In this document: positions 523-63,751 of the stretch, in pieces
Position numbering within the stretch: the first letter of the stretch is position 1
How the letters are laid out: each line of letters begins with the position of its first letter
Source of the DNA: Phallusia mammillata
Lineage: Eukaryota
Direction: 5' to 3'
Length of the DNA stretch: 64,000 bases
Assembly (NCBI GenBank): GCA_965637545.1
Contig: OZ281498.1
Location: 11,036,001-11,100,000, forward strand
Made by a program: the position numbers and the translations under genes
Notes under the pieces: generated by a model
What the model was told of the DNA's origin: nothing
The model's database searches: none
What the model saw: the letters and a program-made list of their open reading frames with translations, nothing else

Positions 523-606
523 GAATCGACGACAATCGTACGACGTCAACACTTCGCCATCGAGTAAGAAGAAATTTCTGCAAAAAGCGGCTGGATTTTT
601 TGACAG
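523..606 (+). CDS. Upstream internal coding exon (phase 2-2), NRRQSYDVNTSPSSKKKFLQKAAGFFD
   Basis: Acceptor tttgtgacgtAG ends at 522; donor AG|gtaacc at 607. The 84-nt exon is open in the phase-2 frame and is in frame with exon 6480. Confidence 0.6.
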
Positions 607-914
607 GTAACCTCAAGTTAAACTTTGTTGCTTGTGACCTTTAGTAACCCCGACACGCCTAACTCCAGGTCCAGACATGGGGCAATTCGTATTCGAATGC
701 ATTCGAATACAGGTTTTGCCACCTTCATGCTGTATTCGAATGATTTTGGCTTTCGTTCGATAGTGCATGAATACAATTCGAATAGTTGATGTTATCTTTT
801 GAACCAACAATTCATGAATACAAAAGCTTGAGTAAATTTATTCGAATACAATTCGAATTGTTCTAGGTTTTTGCCAACCTAAGAATTTGCAAATTCGAAT
901 ACACGATATTTTTT

Positions 915-1160
915 ACGAATACAATTCGAATTGTTGTCGGCCTTTGGCAACGTAACAATTCGTAAAATCGAATACATGACTACATTTGTACGAATACAAT
1001 TCGAATTGTTGTCAGCCTGTTTCTACGTAACAATTCGCAAAATCGAATACATGACTACATTTTTACGAATACAATTCGAATTGTTGTCAGTCTGTGGCAA
1101 CGTAAGATACGTAAAATCGAATACATGACTACATTTTTACGAATACAATGTGAATTGTCG
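915..1160. repeat. About 75-bp tandem repeat (3+ copies) in the left arm of the hAT element
   Basis: Unit acgaatacaattcgaattgttgtc...aatcgaatacatgactacattt starts at 915, 990, 1065 and 1139. Confidence 0.9.
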
Positions 1161-1681
1161 ATTACCTCCAGACTAGGAGTAGTCGAGATTCGAGAATATT
1201 TTGCTATATATTGTTGCCAAATAGATTCGAATACAATTCAAATTGGCAGTGAGTGACCTGATTTGACAAGTTTTTGATTATGTTACGAAACAATCACACA
1301 TAGAAGTTTAACTGTGACGTTACATAAATGGAATTGTGTTACAAAGCTTGCAACATTGGGTTCTTCTCAGCACATGACAGGTGTAGCGTGTTCATGAAGC
1401 AAACATCTCATGTAAATTTGGTTAAATTTATATTACGGAGACTTAAATCAGTCAAGCTGAGGTGGCAAACAAAGCTCGTTGGTTTACATTTTTACCAATA
1501 AATTTGCAATTCATAAACCCATGTTACATTTTGATCGAATACCTTTTAAGTTTCGGGGCGCTTTTATTTCTTTTATTTTCCGCAACTGCAAATATCCGAA
1601 TCGGTGCATTCGAATGCTATTCAATTGTTTGCTTCTTACTACAACTGAACAATTCGTGAATACAAATAACTAGAACTATTA

Positions 1682-2170
1682 ATTCGAATACAATTCGAAT
1701 TGCTACTTCTCAAAAATTACGAAGTATTCATGAATACGAATACACGCTTGGGGTTATTCGAATAGTATTCGAATTACACGTTGTTGTTTTTTGGTCAACT
1801 ATTCATGAATACTAATACTTGACACGTTTTATTCGAATACAATTCGAATTGCTGCCACCTTAATATTACAAAACAATTCGTGAATACGAATACTTGACTT
1901 GCATTATTCGAATACAATTCGAATTGTCGAACTTTAAAAAGTGCTTAGAATTCATGAATACGAATACATGCCTTGGTTTATTCGAATAGTATTCGAATTG
2001 CTTGTCGTTGTAGTTTGGTCAACAATTCATGAATACAAATACTTGACTCGTTTTATTCGAATACCATTCGAATTGCTGTCACTCAAAAATTACCAAAGTA
2101 TTCATGAATTCGAATACAGTCATGCAGGTATTCGTAAAGTATTCGAATACAGGACGCGTGTATTCGACCC
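1682..2170. repeat. About 75-bp degenerate tandem repeat (6-7 copies) in the right arm of the hAT element
   Basis: attcgaata(c/g) recurs at 1682, 1756, 1831, 1906, 1980 and 2055, each time followed by ttc(a/g)tgaatac. Confidence 0.85.
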
Positions 2171-4166
2171 CATGTCTGTCCAGGTCATTGACACCAGTGA
2201 GACAATATTGACATTCCGCTATTCGTGTGTGCTAACTGTCTGTAGTTAAATTGGTTCGAATATTTGACAATGCGACACTATTCTTACGTCACGATTAAAG
2301 TGTTGTTCGCAAATAAGTCAATATAGCCTGGTGGAATCCAACTGCAGTACATGACAAACTTAATTAAATTAATTGTAACAAATCCAAGAAAACATACAGA
2401 GTAACACATTTATGGCTACAATGGAACAAACAATAAAGCAGACATACACAGGGGAAACTTTTATTGATCTTTGCTGAGTTCACCGAATCCATATTAAGTT
2501 TATGAGACCAGTTCACACCAAAATTTAAGAGAAAGCGCGAACCTACGTCTCATCCGCTTTTCCCAGAATCAAAAAATATTCATGACTTATTATGTCACAA
2601 TGCATGAGCACACAACCCGCTGCCATAAAGCATTGTCGGCATGAAGGTTTCAAACAGATCAATCAAAAGTTTGAAAATGTTGCGTCTGTTTTTACAACTA
2701 TAAGAGGCAATTAAAAAAAATTTTCATTCAAAAATATTAATACACCTATTTTTTGGAGAGGTATGGAAAGTTTTAACCTGTTATTATACTACAGTTATTA
2801 TTTGGTTTTTATCTTCCATTTTGTATAAATTTGCTTTAGGAGGAAAAGTTTTTACTTATTTTAGCAGTTTTAAGGTAACTCCTTATAGATGGAATGTTTA
2901 CCGCAGTGTTTAATTAGGGGAAGTGAAATTCAACGCTACTTAACGCTCTCATTACCATGAAACAATAGCGATTGTTTTGTCACACCCCGAACTGTGACGT
3001 GTTGCGCCATCACCCATTCAACATGATATGACGATTTTCTTGTCGTTTTAACTTTTAGTGAAAGGAAACTACCAGCACTTTCCAATTGTTTTTTTTCCCC
3101 TGTCAAGAAGTTGGTGCACATTATGATCTACAAAACTTTTTGTGAAATAAGTGACCGCACGTTTTTGATACGTCATTAGTAGTGACGTCAACCCCCGTTC
3201 GTAATTAGTGTATGACGTATGACCAACGGTTTGTTGGTACAAGTTTGCAAATAAATACAATGATTAGTTCAAAACACCTCATATAATTAAAACGAAATAC
3301 GCAAACAGAAATAGGTCGTGTATTTTTCTTCCGCTCGCCCAGTTTGCACGACCTTCACTTGGGACGACAATTGATGTCACAATATCATGTAATTTATCCT
3401 GTCCTTTCCCGCCATTTATCTCAAGGGACCACAACCATGGCCTCGGTTTAAAATACGTCGCAGTGCATTATTGCTTCATAACCCTTGTGGTTTTGACGCC
3501 ATAATGTTCCCTTGTGACATCACAAAAATCGAGTGTTACTTGAAGCAAGGTCATGTACAGAAATTTATAAATTTGGACTAAATTGCTCACAGAGACAAAG
3601 TACTTGCAACAGTCCCGAATTTGTAAAAGTTTGCCCTTTTCTGCACCCTAGTGGACACTTGTAGGTTTGTAGTCATTTCCGGCATTTCATATAACTTGGT
3701 TTTCTGCTTAGCTTGTATCCTTTTCAAGAAATCATTGAGCAACAAAGTTTCTTCCCCAAAGTTTAGGAACCCTGAAAGTTTTCTTTTAACGATTGAAAAC
3801 TATCTCTCTACAGAAACTCTGGACACATGTTTAATCGTTGTCATTATTTTATACCTGTTCAATGTTTTCGAGGTTCATCTTCCAATATGCTTCTAAAATG
3901 GTTTTCAATTTTTGCAAACAAAACCAGGCATAAAAATTCTACTATTGCTTAAGTTACTTCTAGCTCTTTAGTATAAAACACTCTAACCGAAAAATTGGTG
4001 ACTTGTATGATGCCTTCAAAGAAGTTTATGGGATACCATAACATCAAGTCATCATGAATTGTGTTTAGATCTTAAAGGTGTCTGCCATTTTATTTATTTT
4101 CACAAACACACACGTGAATGAATGTGCATATACTCTGCCTGTTTGTATGAATCATCTATTGCTTCT

Positions 4167-4205
4167 TGTGCTGTGCTGTGCTGTGCTGTGCTGTGCTGTG
4201 CTGTG
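4167..4205. repeat. (CTGTG)n microsatellite
   Basis: About 8 consecutive ctgtg units. Confidence 0.95.
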
Positions 4206-5310
4206 ATGTTAGTACCCCGGGCTTCATGCAGAACGATTAGGATGTTTACATCATATTGTGTGGGCTTTGTGTTAAGCACAGTAAGCTATCCCAGCAAAGA
4301 TAGGCTTACTTTAGTTTTTAGTTGATTAAGGATCGTCTTAACCAGTTCAGGCCAATTAGTTTCTTTTTGGGAAGAAATTTTGTGATGTTGTTTTTTGCTT
4401 GACCTAATGATATTAGACATTCTTGTAAACGGTCTTAAAGTTAACTAGATATAGAACAGTAAAGTAGTAGTACTAGCTCAAAGGTCAGTGGTTTCCAATA
4501 CTGCAATGTTGGGGCCCACCGTAAAACAGTGGTCGTTTATTAGTGGTACTACATGCTAAACATATAGAAATGGAAGGGATTAAGTGGTAAACTTGTGACT
4601 GCTTTTTGTAACAAGTAAGATCAAATGGAATTCTACCATACACACCAGAGTTTTGTTACACAATCTATCTCAAACATAATGTTATTCCGGTTTCGAGATT
4701 TTGTGTCCCATTTTGGAATTTGTTTGTTGTTGTTTTACTAACACAAGGCCTAATGTTAAATGACAACGAGAATTTTTTTTGGCTAGTGGAGGTTTAATGC
4801 AGTCTAGTTAAATCTTTTTGAAAGTTTAGTTTTTTCTCCACTAATGCCACCACGATTACTGTAAACTTGGTAAGTTTGCAAAAGTCTGACAATGTCTTGC
4901 AAAAAAAAAAACATTTCCTTGGTAAACGCATACTGACTGTGGGGAGTAAACAGTAGAAAAGTTTTGCTGATAAATATGGAAGTAAGCTTGTCAGTATGTT
5001 AGTCACTACATGGTGCAATAAGCATCAGGCGAATCATTCCGCAGATGTCAGCAGGTCATTGTTCTTCTGGGTTCTGCATTACGTGGGTCCAGTTTCGAAT
5101 ATAGATTTAACGAAAGGTAATTTTTTGGAGCAAAATAAACCTACGGAGAAAATAAATCATGAATTTAACGTGTTTGATAGAGGATTATTACGCCGTTATC
5201 TGCTGTGGATTCAGAGATGTTCTGAACACATTAATCAGGATTTCAATTTAGTTTAGATTTTAGATAATTTCTTCCCTATTGTTTCTGCTGTGAAAGTCAC
5301 TTTACCTTAA

Positions 5311-6020
5311 ATGGCTGGTAGAAGGGCTTCCCACCGCTTTGGTCGTTCGTTTGACGATTCAACCCGAGTCGATTATGACGTCAACAATCTTGAAGCCGAA
5401 GTTTTCAGCCTAAAATCGAAACTCGAAAATCTCGAACAACAAACAATCGCAAGATTAGGAAACATCGAACAATCTCTCTCGCAACTCAAGAAAGGCGACG
5501 AAAGAAAGGTGTTACGTAAGCAACCAAGCACTACGTCATCAACTTCGTCATTCAGGGTCAACTTTGGGTCAGTCAGCGAGGCTGGTGACGTCACAGAATC
5601 GGATGAGGTCTCTATCGCTTCGGATTTTGGTCCCGGCGCAAGTTTTCTGCTAATCCAGGGCGTCGAGGTCGACAAGTCCTCGACTGAGGATCCGTTTGAG
5701 ACTGAGAAAATGTTGAAGATGTTTTTGCGCGAGTCTCTCGGGTTGAGTTGGGAAGAAATTAAAGCTTTGTCGATTGTGGATTGCTGGAGATTAAGCGGAC
5801 ATGGCGAACCGAAGCGAAAAGGTCGAAAAACGGCTCCTATTGTTGTTAGATTGGAACTGGCCTCTGACGCTGAGTTTATCAAGGAACGCGCTCCTGTTGC
5901 GAAAATTCAGGGTTACAATATCAGTGATTTGCCGTTAAACCAACGCGGCTCAATTAAAGAACACGAAACGACCCAAGGACGAAACAAGAAGCTTAAAAAG
6001 TTAAAAACCGAAAGCCTTGG
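5311..6020 (+). CDS. Large (alternative) first coding exon A: coiled coil + Ser-rich linker + LINE ORF1p-like RRM
   Basis: ATG at 5311, 236 intact codons, donor GG|gtcagt at 6021 (phase 2), in frame with exon 6480. Heptad-like segment at aa 24-61. The segment LLIQGVE...ETEKMLKMFLRESLGL...IVDCWRL...APIVVRL...DAEFIKERA...KIQGYNISDLP follows the non-LTR ORF1 RRM pattern. Confidence 0.85.
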
Positions 6021-6479
6021 GTCAGTTAATATCTTATATCTCCGACTGCACAGTCGTATCTTTAATGACTCTTTCAATGCACACTTTCTTCTTCATCCAA
6101 CGCATATCTTATAGGATTTAGTGCTTATATACTCATCAAAAAGAGTATTTAGGGGTTATGAAACGATTTTACTTCTATCTTGCTTTAATGAGCCAAATGT
6201 TCTTTTTTCAAACCGCCGTACCTCTATGGGCAGTTAGGATCCATGTTTGTTACGTCACAATCCGTTTGCACGTTACATATCAATAAGGACATTACCAGAA
6301 TTCAAATACAACTATTGTTCAATGGTAGGACCAGCCACATAACAGTTCTATCACAGTAAAGCTTTAATCCATTGCTTCCGTTCTATTATGAGTCACAAGG
6401 CAGGCGCATTGTGCGTCACAAGGCCTGTTGTTCGTTTTTTGCTCGATCCTAACATTGCTTTGTTCGATTGTATTGTCAG

Positions 6480-6562
6480 GAGCGACATCTTGCGACGACT
6501 CTCTCCTGATCGTAGGAAATCACCGAAGACAAGTACAGAAAATTTAAGTGAAACTGCTACTG
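6480..6562 (+). CDS. Coding exon (phase 2-1), SDILRRLSPDRRKSPKTSTENLSETAT
   Basis: Acceptor tgtattgtcAG, donor G|gtaaga; frame is continuous with both neighbours. Confidence 0.8.
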
Positions 6563-7098
6563 GTAAGAAAAAAGTATTAAATTTCTGTTGTAACATTTAT
6601 TGCTGTATTTTTATACAAGAACTTTGTTATGACTAAAACCGTGATATAATGTAACTATGTAACACCTTCATGGATGGGTTAGGCCCTCAGAAGACTCTTG
6701 AACGTTTATATTTTTGCTTTTACTTGCGGTGATAGCTTGTTACTAAACATGTGTAGGTTGCAAAGCGAGCGACAAAGCTGAAATTATTGTCAACTGTTGC
6801 CGGATTTTCATTCATTTAAGCGATGCAGTTTCTACTTGGAAAATCAAACTTTAGGATTGATTTAAATTCACCACTTAAAAGTTTGACCTGAAAAGTATTT
6901 TTATTGTCTTCTTTCCCTGTTTGTACTCTGCTAAGATTTTTACTTCATTTAAAATCTAAATATGAAAACTGTATTTTTTTCGTAGGCTCTCACGAATTTA
7001 GGAAAACCTTAATGCTAATGCTTGCATTCTGGATTGTGTACAACCAAAACGCTGTATTATTAAACGTGACGTATAAAACTTTCAACCTTTGTTTTCAG

Positions 7099-7237
7099 GT
7101 TCATCGTTAGACATGAACACGTCGGCAGATGGCGCTAGCACGTCGCCTGGTTCTCAGTCGCAATTTGTCCGCAACTTTTTGCGCAAAAGTTACCACTATG
7201 ACGCCCTTGAGGACAAAGCAGGAAGTCAGGACGAAAA
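7099..7237 (+). CDS. Coding exon (phase 1-2), SSLDMNTSADGASTSPGSQSQFVRNFLRKSYHYDALEDKAGSQDE
   Basis: Acceptor tttgttttcAG, donor AA|gtaaga; open frame. Confidence 0.85.
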
Positions 7238-7609
7238 GTAAGATAACAACATTTTTACGTCACAAACGAAAATATTAAAATTTACGTTATAATGTTGACA
7301 ATACATCAAGCAACTTTTACATCCCTAACTTAACAAGTAATAAAAATACAGCGACTGATTCAGTGTTTTGACTTCAAAATTTATTTACATTTTTTGTTTT
7401 GTCAATACCCTAATTATTGCTGTCTTTTAGTGTAGTTGTGGTATAACCTCAATCAGCACGCCATGGATAGAACAACCTGGTTATAGCACAAAGCATTTGG
7501 TAAAAAAGAAATATTGTTATCGTTGTTTTTATGTACTTCATATACCTCACTTAGTTTATCTGATGTGGGTAATTATGCCACAAACATTTTCAACCATTTC
7601 TATTTTCAG

Positions 7610-7732
7610 GGAAAAATCCTCTTCGAAAACCAAGTTCTCGCCTCGGAGGAGTTTGAAGCGCTTAAAAAAGAAACAGTCAGGAGCATCTTTGGCAGGAGGA
7701 GAGTTGAAGGAGCCGCAACCAACGCACACTCG
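7610..7732 (+). CDS. Coding exon (phase 2-2), basic segment EKSSSKTKFSPRRSLKRLKKKQSG...
   Basis: Acceptor tctattttcAG, donor CG|gtaagt; phase matches exons 7099 and 15098. Confidence 0.85.
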
Positions 7733-9278
7733 GTAAGTTAAAGTTTTGGGAGTCGGACTCACTAAAAGTGTTTGTACGAAAGCGTTGAATAATTGAAAAT
7801 TAAATTTAAATAATTTGAAAACTGCTCCAAAGCAACCAATCTAATCCATCACCTCAAAATCATAAAACACCGCGAAAAATTCATGTACATCAGTGGCTCT
7901 CCTCAACATCACTCTCCTACGTAAATGGAAAAGTTTCCCTTTCATAGCTGAATCAAAACGGTGCATAAGATTGCCGAGAAAACTAAAGCATGATACCATT
8001 GTGTGGTAAAGTCCTAATTGATTGACATTAAAGGTATTTCGTACAAAAATACGGATTTGTTTGCTATTGTCACCTTTGGAACGCTTTTGAACTTGACATT
8101 GTGACGCCATAGGACGTTTTTCTTTGGCCAATAAGATTCCTCGATTACTTTACCGACCTTATTGTTGACTTGATATTCATGAGACTTATTCTTCTTAAAA
8201 TACGTATGCATTTGCTATTGTTAACTTCGGACTTTGGAACGCATCTTTTAATCTCTTTAGCTCAACATTGTGACGTAATACGGCGTTTGTGTTAACAATA
8301 ACTGCGACGTTCTTGGTCACGGTGTCGCGAATATGAAATAGGCGAAGAAATGAACATCTATAGGGGAAAAATATTTGCAGAGATATCAGTGCCACTGTAT
8401 TATGTGGTCTTGCCGTATTTTGTGAATGTGTCCGATGTTTTCTGACAGTCTCATGATAAAGTTAAACTTATTTGGAAGAGATTGTTCCAGAAGTTTTAAG
8501 ATTGCAGTGTGCAAAAGGGGGTTACTTTAAGTTGCCTGACGATTAGATAAGATGTGGTACATTCGATAAATCAGTAGATTAGCTGTCCTAAATCAACTTA
8601 TTGGTGGATCCTTTCCTAAACGGTGATGCAAACTTCGTCTGTTATCATGGCAGTACGGCTTCATTTTTTGTGGTGGAAATTTGTTGCACTTGTAGACACC
8701 TAAATCCTTTAGGTATAAACACATTTTCATTTCCCATCGCTTACTGCGTCGACCCTTTGTGATTTCATAAACACTAACCACTACAAATAATTGACGGAAC
8801 TGACACATTGCTTCAATTACAATTCTTTCAAGCTGCAGCAACGATTCTTTCAAGATAAAAGGTCGTTTACCAATAAGGCTCTTTTATGAATAGCGTTTAG
8901 CTGTTGGGCTCTCCTCCCTTCGTCTTTGTTGTCGATCAGTTTCCGTTTTAAGACAATGCTGGGAAAGCCTGGGCGGTTATCTTAACCAGTCTTTCGGTTT
9001 ACTTATCTCCTTGTCAAAAGGTTAGAAGAGGTACCAGCCTTGTGTTGGAGGTTATGATTGTCAGCTGAAATGTGATTGTTTGTTTCTGCATCTATTGACT
9101 GTTGTGCTTGTATTACTATTGGGTTATATATTCCAAATGTTTTTTTGGCGCTTGAACTAGCTTTGCGGGCGAGTTTTCAACCATGAAGGTCATTTTTGAA
9201 AATATACATTTCAAGTAATAATCATAATACTTTAGCTCGAATCGCAGATTAATCTGCAAAAGTTTTAGTGGTTTAGTG

Positions 9279-9742
9279 CAGTGTTTCCCAACCTATCGGT
9301 CGCGACCCAAAGTTGGGTCGCCTGAACATTCTGTTGGGTCGCTTGTTTTCGAATATGAGCATCTACTTTTTGATTTCGCCTTGTAGCGTTATTTCTACAT
9401 ATATCCCAAGGCTTTAAATTGTTGCCCAACAATAATTTTATCACAACTTGTCATGATAATGGCTAAAACTGTCTGTGACGTCATAAACTAATGTGTTAAC
9501 TCAAAATTGAACGTTGTCTGGCTAATAATTCTTCGATTCAGCTCCAAGTCCTGGCTAAATGGAAATGTTTGGTCGGAAAAAACAACACTATTTGTTTGTT
9601 ATAAGGTTATTGATTTGCTAAACTTGCGTAGTAATTTTTTGAAAAGCTTTCCGAATTTACAGACAAAAATACAACTAAAGTAGCGTGTCCATGGGTCGCG
9701 AGAAACCACTAAATAAAATTTTGGTAAGTATTTGGGTCGCGT

Positions 9743-9765
<23 letters not shown>
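9279..9765. mobile_element. hAT (Charlie-like) MITE, 487 bp
   Basis: TIR CAGTGTTTCCCAACC / GGTTGGGAACCACTG, exact 8-bp TSD GTTTAGTG (9271-9278 and 9766-9773), subterminal GGGTCGC repeats. Confidence 0.9.
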
Positions 9766-9773
<8 letters not shown>

Positions 9774-12700
9774 TGTTGTAGCTTTTAAACCTGAATTTAT
9801 TTTTTAAACCATGACAAATGGTGTTGGATAACCTACGAAATTACTAAATGATTTATATTTATATGTAAAGCTGTCTTACAGTCTATTTAAGCTAAATCGA
9901 TAAAGAAATTCAGCGTCAACCACACTAAACCCGTTTCATGAAAATAGTAGCGGATTTTCGCAACACTAACCTGGCAAGATTGGCGGTATAAGTTATTCTC
10001 AACCCAATGCTTGTATTTCATCAGTTATTCGTGAGCTTTTGCGCTTAATTCGAGTCCTAAGGCGTTCTTTTGTTAGTATCTAGGGTTCTAAGAGGTTTTG
10101 TGTTTGCTTTGTTGGTTGTAAGTTAACCACCGAGGAGAAATTGCTTTGGACAATTTTAGAACAACTATGAGTCATACGAAATTAGGTTGTCAACTTGTCG
10201 GTTTACCACCGCACGTTTTTCGTGCGATTTTATACACATTAGTGTTTGATTCGGCGTTAAACGTTCATTATTATGTAATTTGATGTTGTGTCGCTTGGTA
10301 CAAAAAAGTCATTGCCCTCACAAAAATACAAGATGATGACAACATGGGACTATTAAATGTATTTGTAATTTTCTGTTGTTGTAGAAACCACAATATTTTT
10401 TCATAGACTTGGGCCTAGGTTCGGGATTAAATTCGAAAAAAAAACGGGTTATTTTTTGGGCCTGACTTCACACTCATTATTTTTGTCCTAATTTCATCAA
10501 ATTTTGGCCTAATCTGGACTTGGCTTGTACTTTTGTTTCTAGGCCCCTATTTCATATCCACTTTCAGTTTTGACCCATTTAGTGTTTTAAAAGTTGTCCC
10601 AATACATGTCAAAACACGTTTTAAAACACTACGTGAATAATCATAAGTGTTTGAAGATGCATTTTTTGCTGTGAGTTTTGTTTTCGATTGAGCTACTTTT
10701 TGAGGACGTGTTTAGTATTCTTTTGCATGTGAATAGTCTTATAAATACGTTTTTTGAATGAATTTTGATTGGGCATTGAATAGCTTTTTTCAACCTAACC
10801 TAGTTGAAATGAATTGCTGTTCAGTTGGGTTTTTGTTTGCTTCACAATATTTGCTACAAACAGCAAAAAATCGTTGGCTTTGACATCAATTTGATTCGTG
10901 TTCCGGTTCATACGCACAACGCGACATTTTTCGATAAAAAAATCAATTTTTGTTTCGCACAATAGACGAAGGTATAAAGACGTTTATCATTGGCTTCATC
11001 AGCGATGTCCTTATGTCCGTTATTTTCCCCTATTTTTGAAGGGTTAGGCTATTAGTGTATATGTTATTCATGAAAGAGTTGTAGGTTGTGTTGGATTGCT
11101 TTATAAAATGAAACTACTTGGAAAATAAAAACAGGTTTTAAAAATAAATTAATTAATAAAAAAATACTTTCTTTATACTTTTCAATAAAATTTATTCGCT
11201 AAGTTATATAAGCTGTCTGGTAGTTAAATGGTAAATAGTAATCATTACTTTTCCAAGTAATCTGAACGCCTTGTTTTCGCTGATATTCTCGCAATTGATA
11301 TGATTAATAGTTGTTGGCCAGCTTAGGCATAAAACGCCCATTTATGTTTGTTTATGTAACGACAAACATAAACAACAATGAATCTACCGTCAGCACGAAG
11401 CCCAAGTTAGCATTGTATTAAGGGTTATGCTTGGTAGTCGCCAACAAAATAACAACTAAGATGCTTTTGCTTCAACGGAAAACGGCCTTAATTACTCAAA
11501 AATGCAAGCGACTTGTTTTGATTTAGGTGTACTTAGCCCAAAACAGTTTTGTTAGAAGAAGCAATCGCCCAATTAAGGTGTTTTACAATAAACGGAAGGC
11601 TGCCTTTATCGTTTTGATTGAAGAAACGTATTTAGTTTATCAGAACGGATCTTACTCGGTTTAAACGCCTGCAGTTCGCTGTAAGGCGTGGAAGCTTCCA
11701 TAGAGTCTGGGTGATTGACAGGTCGAAGCACTTCCTGTCGGCTTCCCCGCGTTGATTAGCTGCATTATAGGCGTTTGATTGAAGTGGAAAGTTGATTTGC
11801 AAAACTGATAATTGCCGTTAAAGCCATTGTTCCCCCGCTGACAACGTTCTTTTTGCTTTTGATAAGCCTGGATTGTCAGTTTCATATAAAATTGTACACG
11901 TTGCATTAACAGGCAAGAGTTATTAGCAAATTGACAGGCAAGATAATAATGAATGCAAGTAAACGATTGTTTATGTGCTGCTGTTAATAACAACAGACGG
12001 GGTATTAATTTGATGTGATGAAAGAACCATGAAGGTTTTATTAGTTTCATAGCTTTTTATGTAACAAAATGTTATTTGACATTGTATTGGTTAAAACAGT
12101 AGTTTGTTTTGTAAAAAAATATCAAATAAGGGTAATTTGTGACGTTAGCATGTATTTGTTAATAGTATAGGTAGATTGTAATGTTTTACAATATGTCGAA
12201 AGTAAAAAAAATACATTGTGGATATTTCTTGAAAATAAGCGCGTCGTCTTTTTAAATGTTTAATACGGTTAATAAATAAAGCTTGCATAAATGCTGTTGC
12301 GGTTAAAGTTTATAAATTTAAAACAATCGCAACATAATGTATTACGACTGCGCCAATGAACATAACGCCATAATGTACACAACCAAAAATCGGATTTTGT
12401 CGAAATGTTGACAAGGAAATAACAATACCTGATACGAAGCATTAACATAAATTCTACTTCATTGGGGTATTCAAAGCTCTGTTTCTGAGTACTCAAGTCG
12501 GAAATTGTCACAATTTGAAACAAAATGTTTAAAATCGGTCATTGCGAAACCATTTCGTTGTTACGTCACAAATGGATTTTCACGGCAACAATTACATTGG
12601 AAGGTTGGACTACTCTACTTGTAAGCGATGTTGTTGCAACGTTAGCAAATAATCGAAAATGGATGAAAGAATGTGAGCATGTAATGCAATGGTTAAAAGC

Positions 12701-15097: not shown

Positions 15098-15226
15098 CTC
15101 ATCCAGTGACGGCGCATCATCGCAGAGTAAATGTCACGGATGTGGGTTTGTGGTCAACACCAGCTCGGAGCTGTACGTTTCGGTCAACTCCGTTCACTAC
15201 CACAAGGACTGCTTCAAATGTAGAAA
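15098..15226 (+). CDS. LIM domain exon 1 (CHGC-x19-HKDCFKCRK)
   Basis: Branch-like ctaac and pyrimidine tract ending ccctcAG; donor AA|gtaagt. Supplies the first five zinc ligands of a LIM domain. Confidence 0.9.
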
Positions 15227-18119
15227 GTAAGTCGATTTTGTAGTTATTCGACGTTTTTAACTCAACCAATTGACATACTTACTATCCTCGAGGAAGTCTT
15301 TTTTCTTAAAGTTTTATTTGCTTCTATGCTAGATCTAGCATAAAACTTTAAGAAAAAAGATTTACAAATGCTTGTTTGTGCGGAAAAATTTCAGTTGGTT
15401 AATGGATTTAGTGCAAAATAAGTAAATTTTTGATTCATATCTTAATGTAAGGTGTTGCGTGCTTTGTTTCTACACGTACATACTGCTATACTGAAAACGG
15501 AACCCTTGGTATTGCTTGAAACATCGAATACACATTTTTGTTCTTTCGTTAATGAACTTAACAAAATCAAGGTTTGTTTGGGATTTGAACCCGCGCCTGC
15601 TGAAGTATGTGAGGCAATTGGTCTGTAACTGAAACACACATTTCAGACATGCGATCAAACCTAGGTTCAGTGTTCCAGACAGTCTTGTATTTTAATCCAT
15701 ATTTCCGATACTGTTTGAAAACAAATTTCATGAATCTAAAGTCCAAACGTTTTATTCTTACCTCGAGTTAACGCCTTGGCTAAAATACTTGAGTCTATCA
15801 GTTTGCTTGTCCACAAGACGTCGCAATGGAGCACACTTCAGGTAAGTTCACTTGTAAGACCAAACAAAATCTCATCTGTACGCTCACTTCGAGTCTTTAG
15901 TTCGAACCCCATGAAAGACAATTCAAACACCAAAGACGAATGTATTTAAACTTTTTTAGTCTTCGTTCCTGTCTGTGTTGGATTGTTGCACATTTACGTA
16001 ACCTTTCTGTTTCCGTTTGGCCGATAACGATCTTTTTGATGTTACTATCCACGTGTTGTAGGTTGAAAATTTAGGAATGCTGAATCTTTCTTAAATCAAC
16101 TTGGGACACAATGTGTTCGGAAAAGTACTGCTATTTACATTTTGCACTGTTGCAACATCTGTTGTGTGTATTGTCAATAATAATTTATAATTCTGGGGCA
16201 TCTTACTGCAGAAGACATGTGCGTAATTACATGATTGTTGCATTGTCTGTCAGATTTATGCTAACGCCTTAGTTCAGATTTTGCTAAAATTTTGCCAAAG
16301 GTAAGTATGTCCTTCTGCGTGAATATGTAGAAGCAGACGTTCCGCTGAATAAGGTGCAGTGGCAAAGTGCGTGAAATGAAATGTAAGCCTCGGTCTTACT
16401 CGAGATTTTCTGCACCCTACACATTATGTCTATTTCGTTTTTCGTTTTTTTTTGGCCAAACACAACGTGTGTTTCAAACTGGGTATGTAGTTTGCAGTCT
16501 TACCTGCTTTGTCTTGTTAGATCATCACGTGTATTGTTTTGCAACGGGTCATTCGCGTATTTGTCTTCAGCAAACAGCACGGGACAGAAAAGTAAACAAT
16601 GTGCCGCTGCCGTTTGTAGCGAACGACTACTGCAAAACACATTTGCGGCGAAAGCTTAGAATTGTTCTGTATTGTAGTAAGTGGTAGCGTGGCATTTGTT
16701 ATGCTTATGATGCATACAGTCTTTGTTATGGTTAAGCTCGAAGTGGAAGGCTTTCCGATTCTTTATTTTTAATCTTTTGCACGTGATAAAAATCGCCTTT
16801 TGGGGGCAAATAACGCATTGACGTTGTAGTTGCTTGCATTATGTTGACTCAAAATGTCATATCTGTATCAGGTGTTTTTTGTTAAGTAAACTTTACAATT
16901 CGAATTTTCTGTTTTTTGACCCAAAGAATTTGATTTTGGGTTGACAAATTTGAAACGTTTACCAAATGTTCATTAAAAATGCCGCATTTTTGCGATTACT
17001 CGTATTTAAATGTTTTATTGTCCAACAGCTGCAACTATACTAGCGTAAACTGAAGATAGCTTTAAATTGAATTTACATCACTTCCAATTCATATACGTGT
17101 AAAGTGAGATGTCAAATGGATTCGGCTGAGAGAACAAATGCGTTTTGTCGGTTTAAATGCCGGCGCACTGAGCTAGTTTCTTAAAATATGACAGGAACCG
17201 TAGTGCTCAGGATATCGCATACTCTGTACAGTGGAAATGTACACAAAGATAGCTGCTGTTAAACTGATATTGGCTGTAGTTTGTACTGGTTTGTGTTTGT
17301 TAAGATGGAGTTTAGATGAAGTCACTTATAAAACGTTATGTAAACGCATTATAGGGCATTTTATAAAGTCAAAAATTAAACACAAGTTATAGAAACTTTA
17401 TGTAATTAAATGGCTTTGTAACCTTTGGATTTTGTATTGTCAGATTTTTAGATACTGTTCTCCATTAATAAGTAAAACGGCGTTTTTTCTTAACTTTGTA
17501 CAAATTGTATACAGATACGTTCTGCAGAGCGAAACAAAAACAAACATTGTGTTTCCGGCCTAAATTGTCAAAGTAGGCAACTTTTGTTTGAGATTTCTAT
17601 GTTGTTATGGTTGAAACAAAATTTTTTTTTCCGAAACATTGTATAACCAACGGGTGGTATTAAATACATTGGCAGAAAGTAAAGGCTTTAAAATCGGAAT
17701 TCTATTTTTACCCTATTTAATAAACCATGTCAACAGAAGTGTAAAGCGTAAACAGCCGAAATGAAGTAAAACAATTATAAGTTTGGCATTTTTTATTGGA
17801 ATTTTAATTCTTTTATTCTTAGAAAAACTGCCGATACCATTAGCTGATTAAGAACCATTTTTGGTAGAGTTTATACCACTGCGCATGGAATTGTTGTTTT
17901 ATGTTCGGAACTTGTCAGACTTCAATAAATAACATATGAGGTGCGCTTCGTTAAAACGTTATAGGACACTACGATTGTAGCGTTCCTTGCCACAACAGCA
18001 AACTAAAGTTAAGCAGATGCAAGTAAAAGCGACATTTCTAAGCTTATTGGTCGTGAACCAGTATCGTCTGGTGTCGTTATATGTTCAACATTTGTCACAG
18101 ACTTGCATGCTAAGACCGA

Positions 18120-62657: not shown

Positions 62658-62720
62658 GCGACACGCATGGATGAGCAGCGCTGTTCTCTTCGACTTCCTG
62701 TCCCCACCAACGACAACCAG
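62658..62720 (+). CDS. RAP1GAP: GoLoco motif exon 2, ATRMDEQRCSLRLPVPTNDNQ
   Basis: Acceptor ttttcaAAG, donor AG|gtctgt, phase 0-0; RMDEQRCS is identical to human Rap1GAP. Confidence 0.92.
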
Positions 62721-62767: not shown

Positions 62768-63368
62768 TAAGCGACCCCTAACCCAGTCGCATATTTTTAT
62801 TATCTAACGTCATTAGGTTATGACGTCACATTGACGTCAGATTCTATTCTATGGCTCGGTTCGAATTTCGATTTAATATCCTCTTTTTCTTTTCATGAAA
62901 TTTGCCTTTTTACTAACTCGAAATAATGAATTTGAGTTTTAAAAAAACAAATTAATCAAATTGATCGAAATTGACCACAGTAACAATCGACAGTTGTTGT
63001 TTCAATTCACTCTGAAACAACGAGATAATAATTTGTTTTGTTTATTTTTGCTGCATGAAGTTTTCTAGCTGAGCGTAGTTGTGTGTGTTTGTTTTTTGTG
63101 TAGTTGTTGCTGCGTGTGATTTCCACGCTTTTTATACGAAAATCACTGTGCTGCTGTCGTTGTGTGATTGTACGATGTCGCTTGTTGCGATATTAACTTA
63201 AAATTTACTAAATTTTAAGTTCGTTTTAAAGCAATGTATAAAAGCGAGTTCCTTATGAAACCAGTCGAAATATCATAAACAGTGTTTGAGTTTAAAAATT
63301 CCGCACAATTTTATTTTGCGAAACACTACTATTAGAACAGCCCCATAACCCCTAAATTACCCCTACAG

Positions 63369-63602
63369 CCTGACGCTCCAACCCCACTGTATCCATCAAT
63401 CAACGAGGTGCTGCGCAACGGAGCCCCCTACGCCCAGGTTATTCCCCCTCCGCATGGGGGATACTGGGCTCAGGGATTTCACCCCGACTCTCCCCACCTC
63501 CGTGTCGACCCCGATGAGCTCCAGTGCGTCGTCGGCTCCTACGTCAGCCATATCCACAAAGATGACGTCACTACGGCTTATCGCGAGCATTTTGTTGGAA
63601 AG
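63369..63602 (+). CDS. RAP1GAP: Rap1GAP exon, start of the conserved dimerization/catalytic region
   Basis: Acceptor ccctacAG, donor AG|gtaaat; PDAPTPLYPSINEVLRNGAPYAQVIPPPHGGYWAQG...AYREHFVGK aligns with Rap1GAP YPSVHEVL...GGYWIEG...IYRKHFLGK. Confidence 0.95.
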
Positions 63603-63751
63603 GTAAATATATCTGAAAATGGAGTCATAAAACGTAGTTTGCCGTAACAAGAATAAACTGAAAGTAAACTGTAGTGCTCTGTCCCAGACAAATGCTAGGG
63701 GTGCTTTTGTACCCCCAGTGTACCATATCATCTTCAAACTACCGCTTAGTG

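Follow-up and report, generated by a model that had tools for sequence, protein, structure and literature searches.

Whether the 5' part of a LINE retrotransposon has become an alternative beginning of a small-GTPase regulator is the question raised by an open reading frame in Phallusia mammillata. The stretch of DNA analysed here (the window) comprises 64,000 nucleotides of this ascidian (contig OZ281498.1, positions 11,036,001 to 11,100,000, assembly GCA_965637545.1), and a sequence-only reading of it had proposed that a domesticated LINE ORF1p, with a coiled coil and an RRM, is spliced there onto Rap1GAP. The explanation favoured by the follow-up analysis, with a probability of roughly 0.7, is that exon 5311-6020 is an ancient, single-copy, LINE ORF1-derived alternative first coding exon of ascidian Rap1GAP, spliced in frame to exon 2.

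The open reading frame is intact, as had been claimed: it occupies 5311..6114 on the forward strand (267 codons), and an in-frame TAA stands immediately 5' of the ATG. The exon ends at 6020 with G/GTCAGT, leaving over two bases of a codon, and a frame read past this donor runs through 31 further codons to a stop at 6112-6114. The parts of the exon and its neighbours are collected in Table 1. In the 36 nucleotides before the ATG (5275-5310), a pyrimidine-rich tract followed by AG, about 14 nt upstream of the start codon, resembles a 3' splice site; this AG, near position 5295, might receive a spliced leader by trans-splicing or serve as the cis acceptor of an upstream exon that is non-coding.

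Table 1. Positions within the window of the candidate ORF1p-derived exon, its parts and the neighbouring exons
Feature	Position	Strand	Basis and remarks
Upstream exon, 3' end	523..606	+	contig loose end equals 570-599 (X1, X4); donor GT at 607; start at 523 guessed from an acceptor-like tAG at 520-522
Putative ORF1p-derived first coding exon	5311..6020	+	236 codons plus 2 nt; TAA-ATG start; phase-2 donor GG/GT
Coiled-coil helix, aa 15-67	5353..5511	+	AF2 helix, pLDDT 79-95; conserved RLGNIE (RhxxhE-like) in alignment A1
Disordered Ser/Thr-rich linker, aa 68-108	5512..5634	+	pLDDT 32-57; poorly conserved in A1
ORF1p-type non-canonical RRM, aa 109-209	5635..5937	+	AF2 model, structure searches, profile match
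Basic tail, KKLKK-type, up to splice donor	5938..6020	+	pLDDT <50; basic stretch, then Gly in all homologs
Predicted intron, GT..AG, 459 nt	6021..6479	+	donor and acceptor phases conserved in eight taxa; its splicing not seen in the RNA contigs
Shared exon 2 (SDILRRLSPDRRKSPKTS...)	6480..6562	+	RNA joints 606->6480 and 6562->7099; conserved in seven taxa
Exon 3	7099..7237	+	RNA joints; open in frame; conserved in related loci
Exon 4	7610..7732	+	RNA joints; conserved in related loci
LIM exon, first half of LIM domain, end approximate	15098..15227	+	contig loose end after 7732 equals 15098-15127

Transcription was followed in four sequencing runs over 4400-10399, in the form of contigs and not of raw reads; two of them (X2 and X3) are DNA, with even depth, and two (X1 and X4) are RNA, with exon-only coverage and GT..AG joints. 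The RNA contigs of both X1 and X4 represent a canonical isoform that skips the ORF1p-like exon (606->6480-6562->7099-7237->7610-7732->15098), which thus lies inside a 5.9-kb intron, 607-6479, of the observed transcripts. The exon is itself transcribed, weakly, in one run: X1 holds low-depth contigs at 5363-5659 and 5644-5832, with the neighbouring intron uncovered and a single difference from the genome (5790 A>G, synonymous in an Arg codon), and X4 shows zero coverage of it. The LIM exon matches the Pfam LIM domain with E 0.0015, which is below the cut-off because only half a domain is encoded.

On the 5' side, the spliced contigs extend a further 1.25-1.3 kb beyond the 606->6480 joint. The exon ending at 606, if coding, ends in phase 2, as expected of interchangeable 5' exons, and contains no ATG in that frame; homologs of it were not found in related loci, and nothing obvious in the way of upstream coding exons appeared in the 10 kb before the window. 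Two TGACGT(CA) sites resembling cAMP-response elements are present at 486-493 and 514-519. Within the intron 607-6479, AT-rich tandem repeat arrays occupy 829-1158 and 1648-2118, with a unit of about 75 bp and higher-order units of 149 bp and 224 bp, and they account for the repetitive 'IRIQFELLS' pseudo-ORFs. Further downstream, 9279-9765 is a very high-copy dispersed repeat that occurs in the RNA runs as well; its word depth in the DNA runs ranges from tens of thousands up to about 190,000, compared with 90-340 in the flanks.

A separate short transcript or nested gene inside the 5.9-kb intron, composed of the ORF exon, exon 2 and a few more exons or reading through to 6112-6114, would explain the locus with no RapGAP protein containing the exon, and it is unlikely, though the most probable of the alternatives. 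In its favour, the observed transcripts skip the exon, no 6020->6480 joint is seen in the RNA contigs of X1 and X4, the frame continues to a stop past the donor, and no database protein links the exon to RapGAP. Seven homolog clusters were recovered among 1.84 billion representatives (30-38% identity, E 1e-30 to 9e-4, 214-316 aa, all open), all of them exon-sized ORF calls on genomic contigs, with no named protein and no longer fusion among them. A word-indexed protein search with the exon had returned nothing, so that the exhaustive search of representatives was needed.

The genomic DNA around these homologs speaks for splicing. The homolog ORF calls run through the splice donor and their homology ends at a conserved Gly that follows a stretch resembling KKLKK; beyond it, the tails of the eight taxa are unrelated and of differing length while GG/GT is invariant (8 of 8 loci, at the homologous position), which argues against read-through. 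The phase-2 donor after 6020 noted earlier is thus real and shared with seven other taxa. Moreover, an exon 2 homolog lies on the same strand, 0.2-0.7 kb 3' of the donor, in all seven foreign loci, and exons 3 and/or 4 come next in six of them, the seventh (L022) being a 2.8-kb contig too short to reach that far. In the six loci where the exon 2 motif was located, the acceptor is ag/N, so that GG+N encodes Gly, followed by SDLLRRLSPD(R/Q)RKSPKTS. Exon 2 is 44-73% identical in protein across seven taxa and its DNA differences are largely synonymous, including AGC/TCT serine codons; therefore, exon 2 encodes protein in exactly the frame that the phase-2 donor imposes. The splicing of exon 2 to exons 3, 4 and the LIM exon likewise counts against a short transcript. 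The conserved donor, the matching acceptor phase and the linkage in eight taxa together point to a join from 6020 to 6480. Of the earlier claim of an in-frame join, the phase relationship with a conserved coding exon has stood, whereas the RNA contigs contain only the form that skips the exon.

The presumed host gene is indicated by exons beyond the window. Exon matches to Rap_GAP (PF02145) lie at C5:11101320-11102990 (+), 1.3-3 kb past the window end and on the same strand as the ORF exon, and the best PDB matches of these exons are Rap1GAP structures (1srq and 3brw, E 3e-15 and 1e-18). Between them and the LIM exon, GoLoco is represented by a weak half-motif only (window 62661-62690), and a PDB search with window 63336-63644 gave no match. 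From strand and order, we infer that the transcript containing exons 2, 3, 4 and the LIM exon reaches the RapGAP exons.

The nature of the encoded domain is established by structural and profile evidence: it is of the LINE ORF1p type. An exhaustive VIA-align search of 48,161 PDB chains with the AF2 model of the RRM gave Z >= 8 only for three human LINE-1 ORF1p entries, namely 2w7a (Z 9.4, 94 aligned residues, rmsd 4.5), 2ldy (9.2) and 2yko (8.5), aligning model residues 109-209 with ORF1p 154-253; the best chain other than ORF1p reached Z 7.4 and ordinary RRMs at most 7.0. The AlphaFold and Foldseek check suggested by the sequence-only reading gave the same answer, as human L1 ORF1p takes the first three places among 350,542 PDB chains (E 7e-4 to 1.5e-3), with the reservation that even 7e-4 is marginal and that generic ferredoxin-like folds follow close behind. 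After residue 209, the model contains no C-terminal domain, and the disordered basic tail up to the donor occupies its place.

Comparison of profiles leads to the same family. With hhalign, the RRM profile of the exon family (A2) matches that of a LINE ORF1 family of the same genome (A3) with a probability of 95.6% and E 1.1e-8; the score is 57.1, against 19.1 for the best of 100 column shuffles of A3 and 11.1 for the reversed alignment. The full-length profile alignment is collinear through the coiled coil, and BLASTP between exon and LINE ORF1 yields 30% identity over 82 residues (E 1e-5 for a single comparison). The motif correspondences that had been listed from the letters are recovered against a true LINE ORF1, since LLIQGVE pairs with NLLFHGIP, ETEKMLKMFLRESLGL with QTEHVLRTFITEKLQY, the CWRL stretch with the IHRL stretch, and APIVVRL with APIVIKF.

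The Pfam check proposed for the same domain, in contrast, failed: at E <= 10, neither the exon nor any of the eight family members matched PF02994 (Transposase_22), and the gathering score was not reached. Even the LINE ORF1 family of this genome has a best E of 0.0076 with PF02994, below the cut-off, with matches in 4 of 13 members. When the exon was compared by sequence with Pfam and PDB, only coiled-coil noise came back, and a PDB profile search with A2 yielded a spurious repeat match. Searches of the ESM Atlas are to be taken as leads only: feature scores stayed below 0.9 and a PF02994 cluster came no higher than rank 15, and the fold search gave TM 0.35-0.41 to unnamed eukaryotic proteins of 246-322 aa. 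ORF1p-type exons such as this one evade Pfam-based screens; the present one was recognised only by structure and by profile-profile comparison.

The LINE family used as a yardstick came to light through weak matches of exon residues 110-214 within the genome (27-30% identity, E 0.4-6). Its ORF1 encodes 244 aa, and after it come endonuclease (PF03372) and reverse transcriptase (PF00078, E 5e-39) sequences. The family numbers at least 20 copies of ORF1, of which five are intact and 98-100% identical. The AlphaFold2 model of this ORF1 contains a coiled coil (25-96), an RRM (100-196) and a C-terminal domain (200-236) formed by a helix (200-218) and two strands. In a control search, it matches the human L1 ORF1p trimer 2yko with Z 13.2 over 172 residues and the RRM 2w7a with Z 10.7; therefore, it is an L1-type ORF1p and a good yardstick. 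The exon model has the same order of elements, down to the short helix that follows alpha-1 and the splitting of alpha-2.

Several observations concern this LINE family in its own right. The named protein nearest to it comes from Phallusia mammillata. Copies of the element lie at L004:1372-2785 (-) and L005:146-1938 (+), and an intact ORF1 copy, 98% identical, lies at G000:C5:11226492-11227223 (-), about 126 kb past the window end. A copy adjoins a C2H2 zinc-finger ORF at one site and a retroviral-type integrase fragment at another, and both upstream ORFs share their final 25 residues, which are the LINE 5' leader read through. Apparent fusions of ORF1 with zinc fingers in this genome are thus possible artefacts of such read-through and should be checked.

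An ordinary host RRM or other ferredoxin-like domain, whose likeness to ORF1p is convergent or too remote to imply descent from a transposon, is a quite improbable explanation. The missing PF02994 match, the identity of only 15-18% to human ORF1p and the many RRMs at Z 6-7 speak for it. Against it, two structure searches, independent of each other, both place ORF1p in the top three positions and separate it by a gap from other RRMs, the profile match to LINE ORF1 is far above the shuffles, and the order of coiled coil and RRM is shared in a collinear alignment; moreover, the exon family is confined to seven clusters among the representatives searched, while LINE ORF1 is widespread.

The derivation of the exon from a LINE ORF1 being preferred, its age can be considered. 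The eight exon sequences are mutually only 23-46% identical; therefore, the capture is older than deep splits among these taxa, and the reading frame has been kept open. Pairs of exons are saturated for dN/dS, the closest ones being 46% identical or else identical. A search of the 240-Mb genome found the exon as a single copy, which departs from the pattern of a young insertion, and no ORF2 remnant, either endonuclease or reverse transcriptase, was found anywhere in the window. The exon is single copy, old and conserved, and therefore domesticated rather than recently inserted; on these points, namely copy number, the lack of ORF2 and domestication, the sequence-only reading was right. A recent or decaying LINE fragment, open by chance and without host function, is already contradicted by the available evidence and deserves hardly any credence: an active LINE family with a similar ORF1 does exist in the genome, but the exon is single copy and only 27-30% identical to the ORF1 copies of that family, lacks an ORF2 remnant, and, in eight taxa whose protein sequences differ by 54-77%, remains open at the same place beside exon 2.

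The coiled coil had been placed at aa 24-61, ahead of the RRM, and the AF2 helix that covers this span is somewhat longer. Its RLGNIE, of the RhxxhE type, is kept in nearly all homologs and corresponds to RLTSIE in the LINE ORF1. The RhxxhE motif favours trimeric coiled coils and is present in L1 ORF1p too. A model of three copies of residues 12-70 is parallel and in register, with a score of 0.74 against 0.47 for the best control; the runs shared at least 91% of contacts, and the partner pLDDT was 81 or higher. When the mark used for self-association was calibrated, with two copies and not with three, 21 of 30 proteins known as same-chain pairs attained it, as against 0 of 23 proteins solved as single chains. 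The modelling thus supports a self-associating coiled coil and fits a trimer and a dimer alike. It had been suggested that the exon could add trimerisation or RNA binding to one GAP isoform; self-association has found support, whereas RNA binding of the ORF1p kind is doubtful in a protein that lacks the C-terminal domain.

In the proposed mechanism, the 5' part of a LINE ORF1 would have been captured, with the N-terminal region, coiled coil and RRM kept and the C-terminal domain and ORF2 lost. The exon would start translation itself, and its phase-2 donor would join exon 2 at 6480 in frame and, onward, exons 3 and 4, the LIM exon and presumably the GoLoco and RapGAP exons. The product would be a minor isoform in which the GAP domain is preceded by a parallel, self-associating coiled coil, probably a trimer like that of ORF1p, and by an RRM of the ORF1p type. 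The likeliest effect would be oligomerisation of the GAP, or a new partner or location.

Co-option of ORF1p is rare, the known cases being L1TD1 and four vertebrate fusion isoforms. L1TD1 is a mammalian gene that stands alone rather than an exon joined to a different gene; it derives from L1 ORF1 and has duplicated ORF1p-like modules, the C-terminal domain included. It resembles the present case in that an ORF1p-derived coiled coil and RRM have been retained by the host. Human LINE-1 ORF1p (2w7a, 2ldy, 2yko) and the LINE of this genome (L002, L005) share with the exon a coiled coil followed by a non-canonical RRM, the order of elements and the RhxxhE-like motifs, whereas the exon is single copy, lacks the C-terminal domain and ORF2, and is 15-18% and 27-30% identical to them, respectively.

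L1TD1, the precedent that had been named, is not the only one. ORF1p-derived alternative first or last coding exons have been described in MYL4 ('Lyosin'), RFX5, NUP42 and USP4 (Kitao, Ichiyanagi and Nakagawa 2025; PMC12129022), in a screen of vertebrate RefSeq proteins only, the latter three as L1-RFX5 (in catfish), NUP42-L1 and USP4-L1. Lyosin results from an L1 ORF1-derived alternative first coding exon of MYL4 that contains the N-terminal region, coiled coil and RRM without the C-terminal domain, and its purifying selection dates from before the split of Sauropsida (PMC12129022). According to these authors, native RNA binding is probably lost together with the C-terminal domain, while oligomerisation through the coiled coil may persist; a fusion to a GTPase regulator was not found in that paper (PMC12129022). 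Their argument carries over to the present exon.

Lyosin and L1-RFX5 are like exon 5311-6020 in being alternative first coding exons from a LINE ORF1 with the same retained regions and the same missing domain, a canonical GT donor, clade-wide conservation and a canonical isoform without the exon. They splice to ordinary host exons, whereas the corresponding joint here is predicted and absent from the RNA contigs. The present exon also differs in its host, Rap1GAP, in its lineage, ascidians rather than vertebrates, in the disordered linker of about 40 residues between coiled coil and RRM, and in a sequence too diverged for PF02994. Thus, what is new is the host gene, a Rap1 GTPase-activating protein, the ascidian lineage and a divergence beyond the reach of Pfam; the kind of fusion itself has already been published.

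A broader reading goes further and is tentative: the exon may be the first non-vertebrate case of an ORF1p-derived exon fusion, old enough for ascidian lineages with copies only 23-46% identical to share it, in which a Rap1GAP isoform is oligomerised, perhaps trimerised, and steered by the RRM to RNA, RNP granules or LINE particles. If true, Rap1 signalling would be linked to RNA or retrotransposon biology. A conserved ascidian Rap1GAP case would show that capture of a LINE 5' end as a first coding exon arose independently outside vertebrates, and, because ascidian embryos can be manipulated in the laboratory, it would be tractable for asking what an ORF1p module does on a signalling enzyme.
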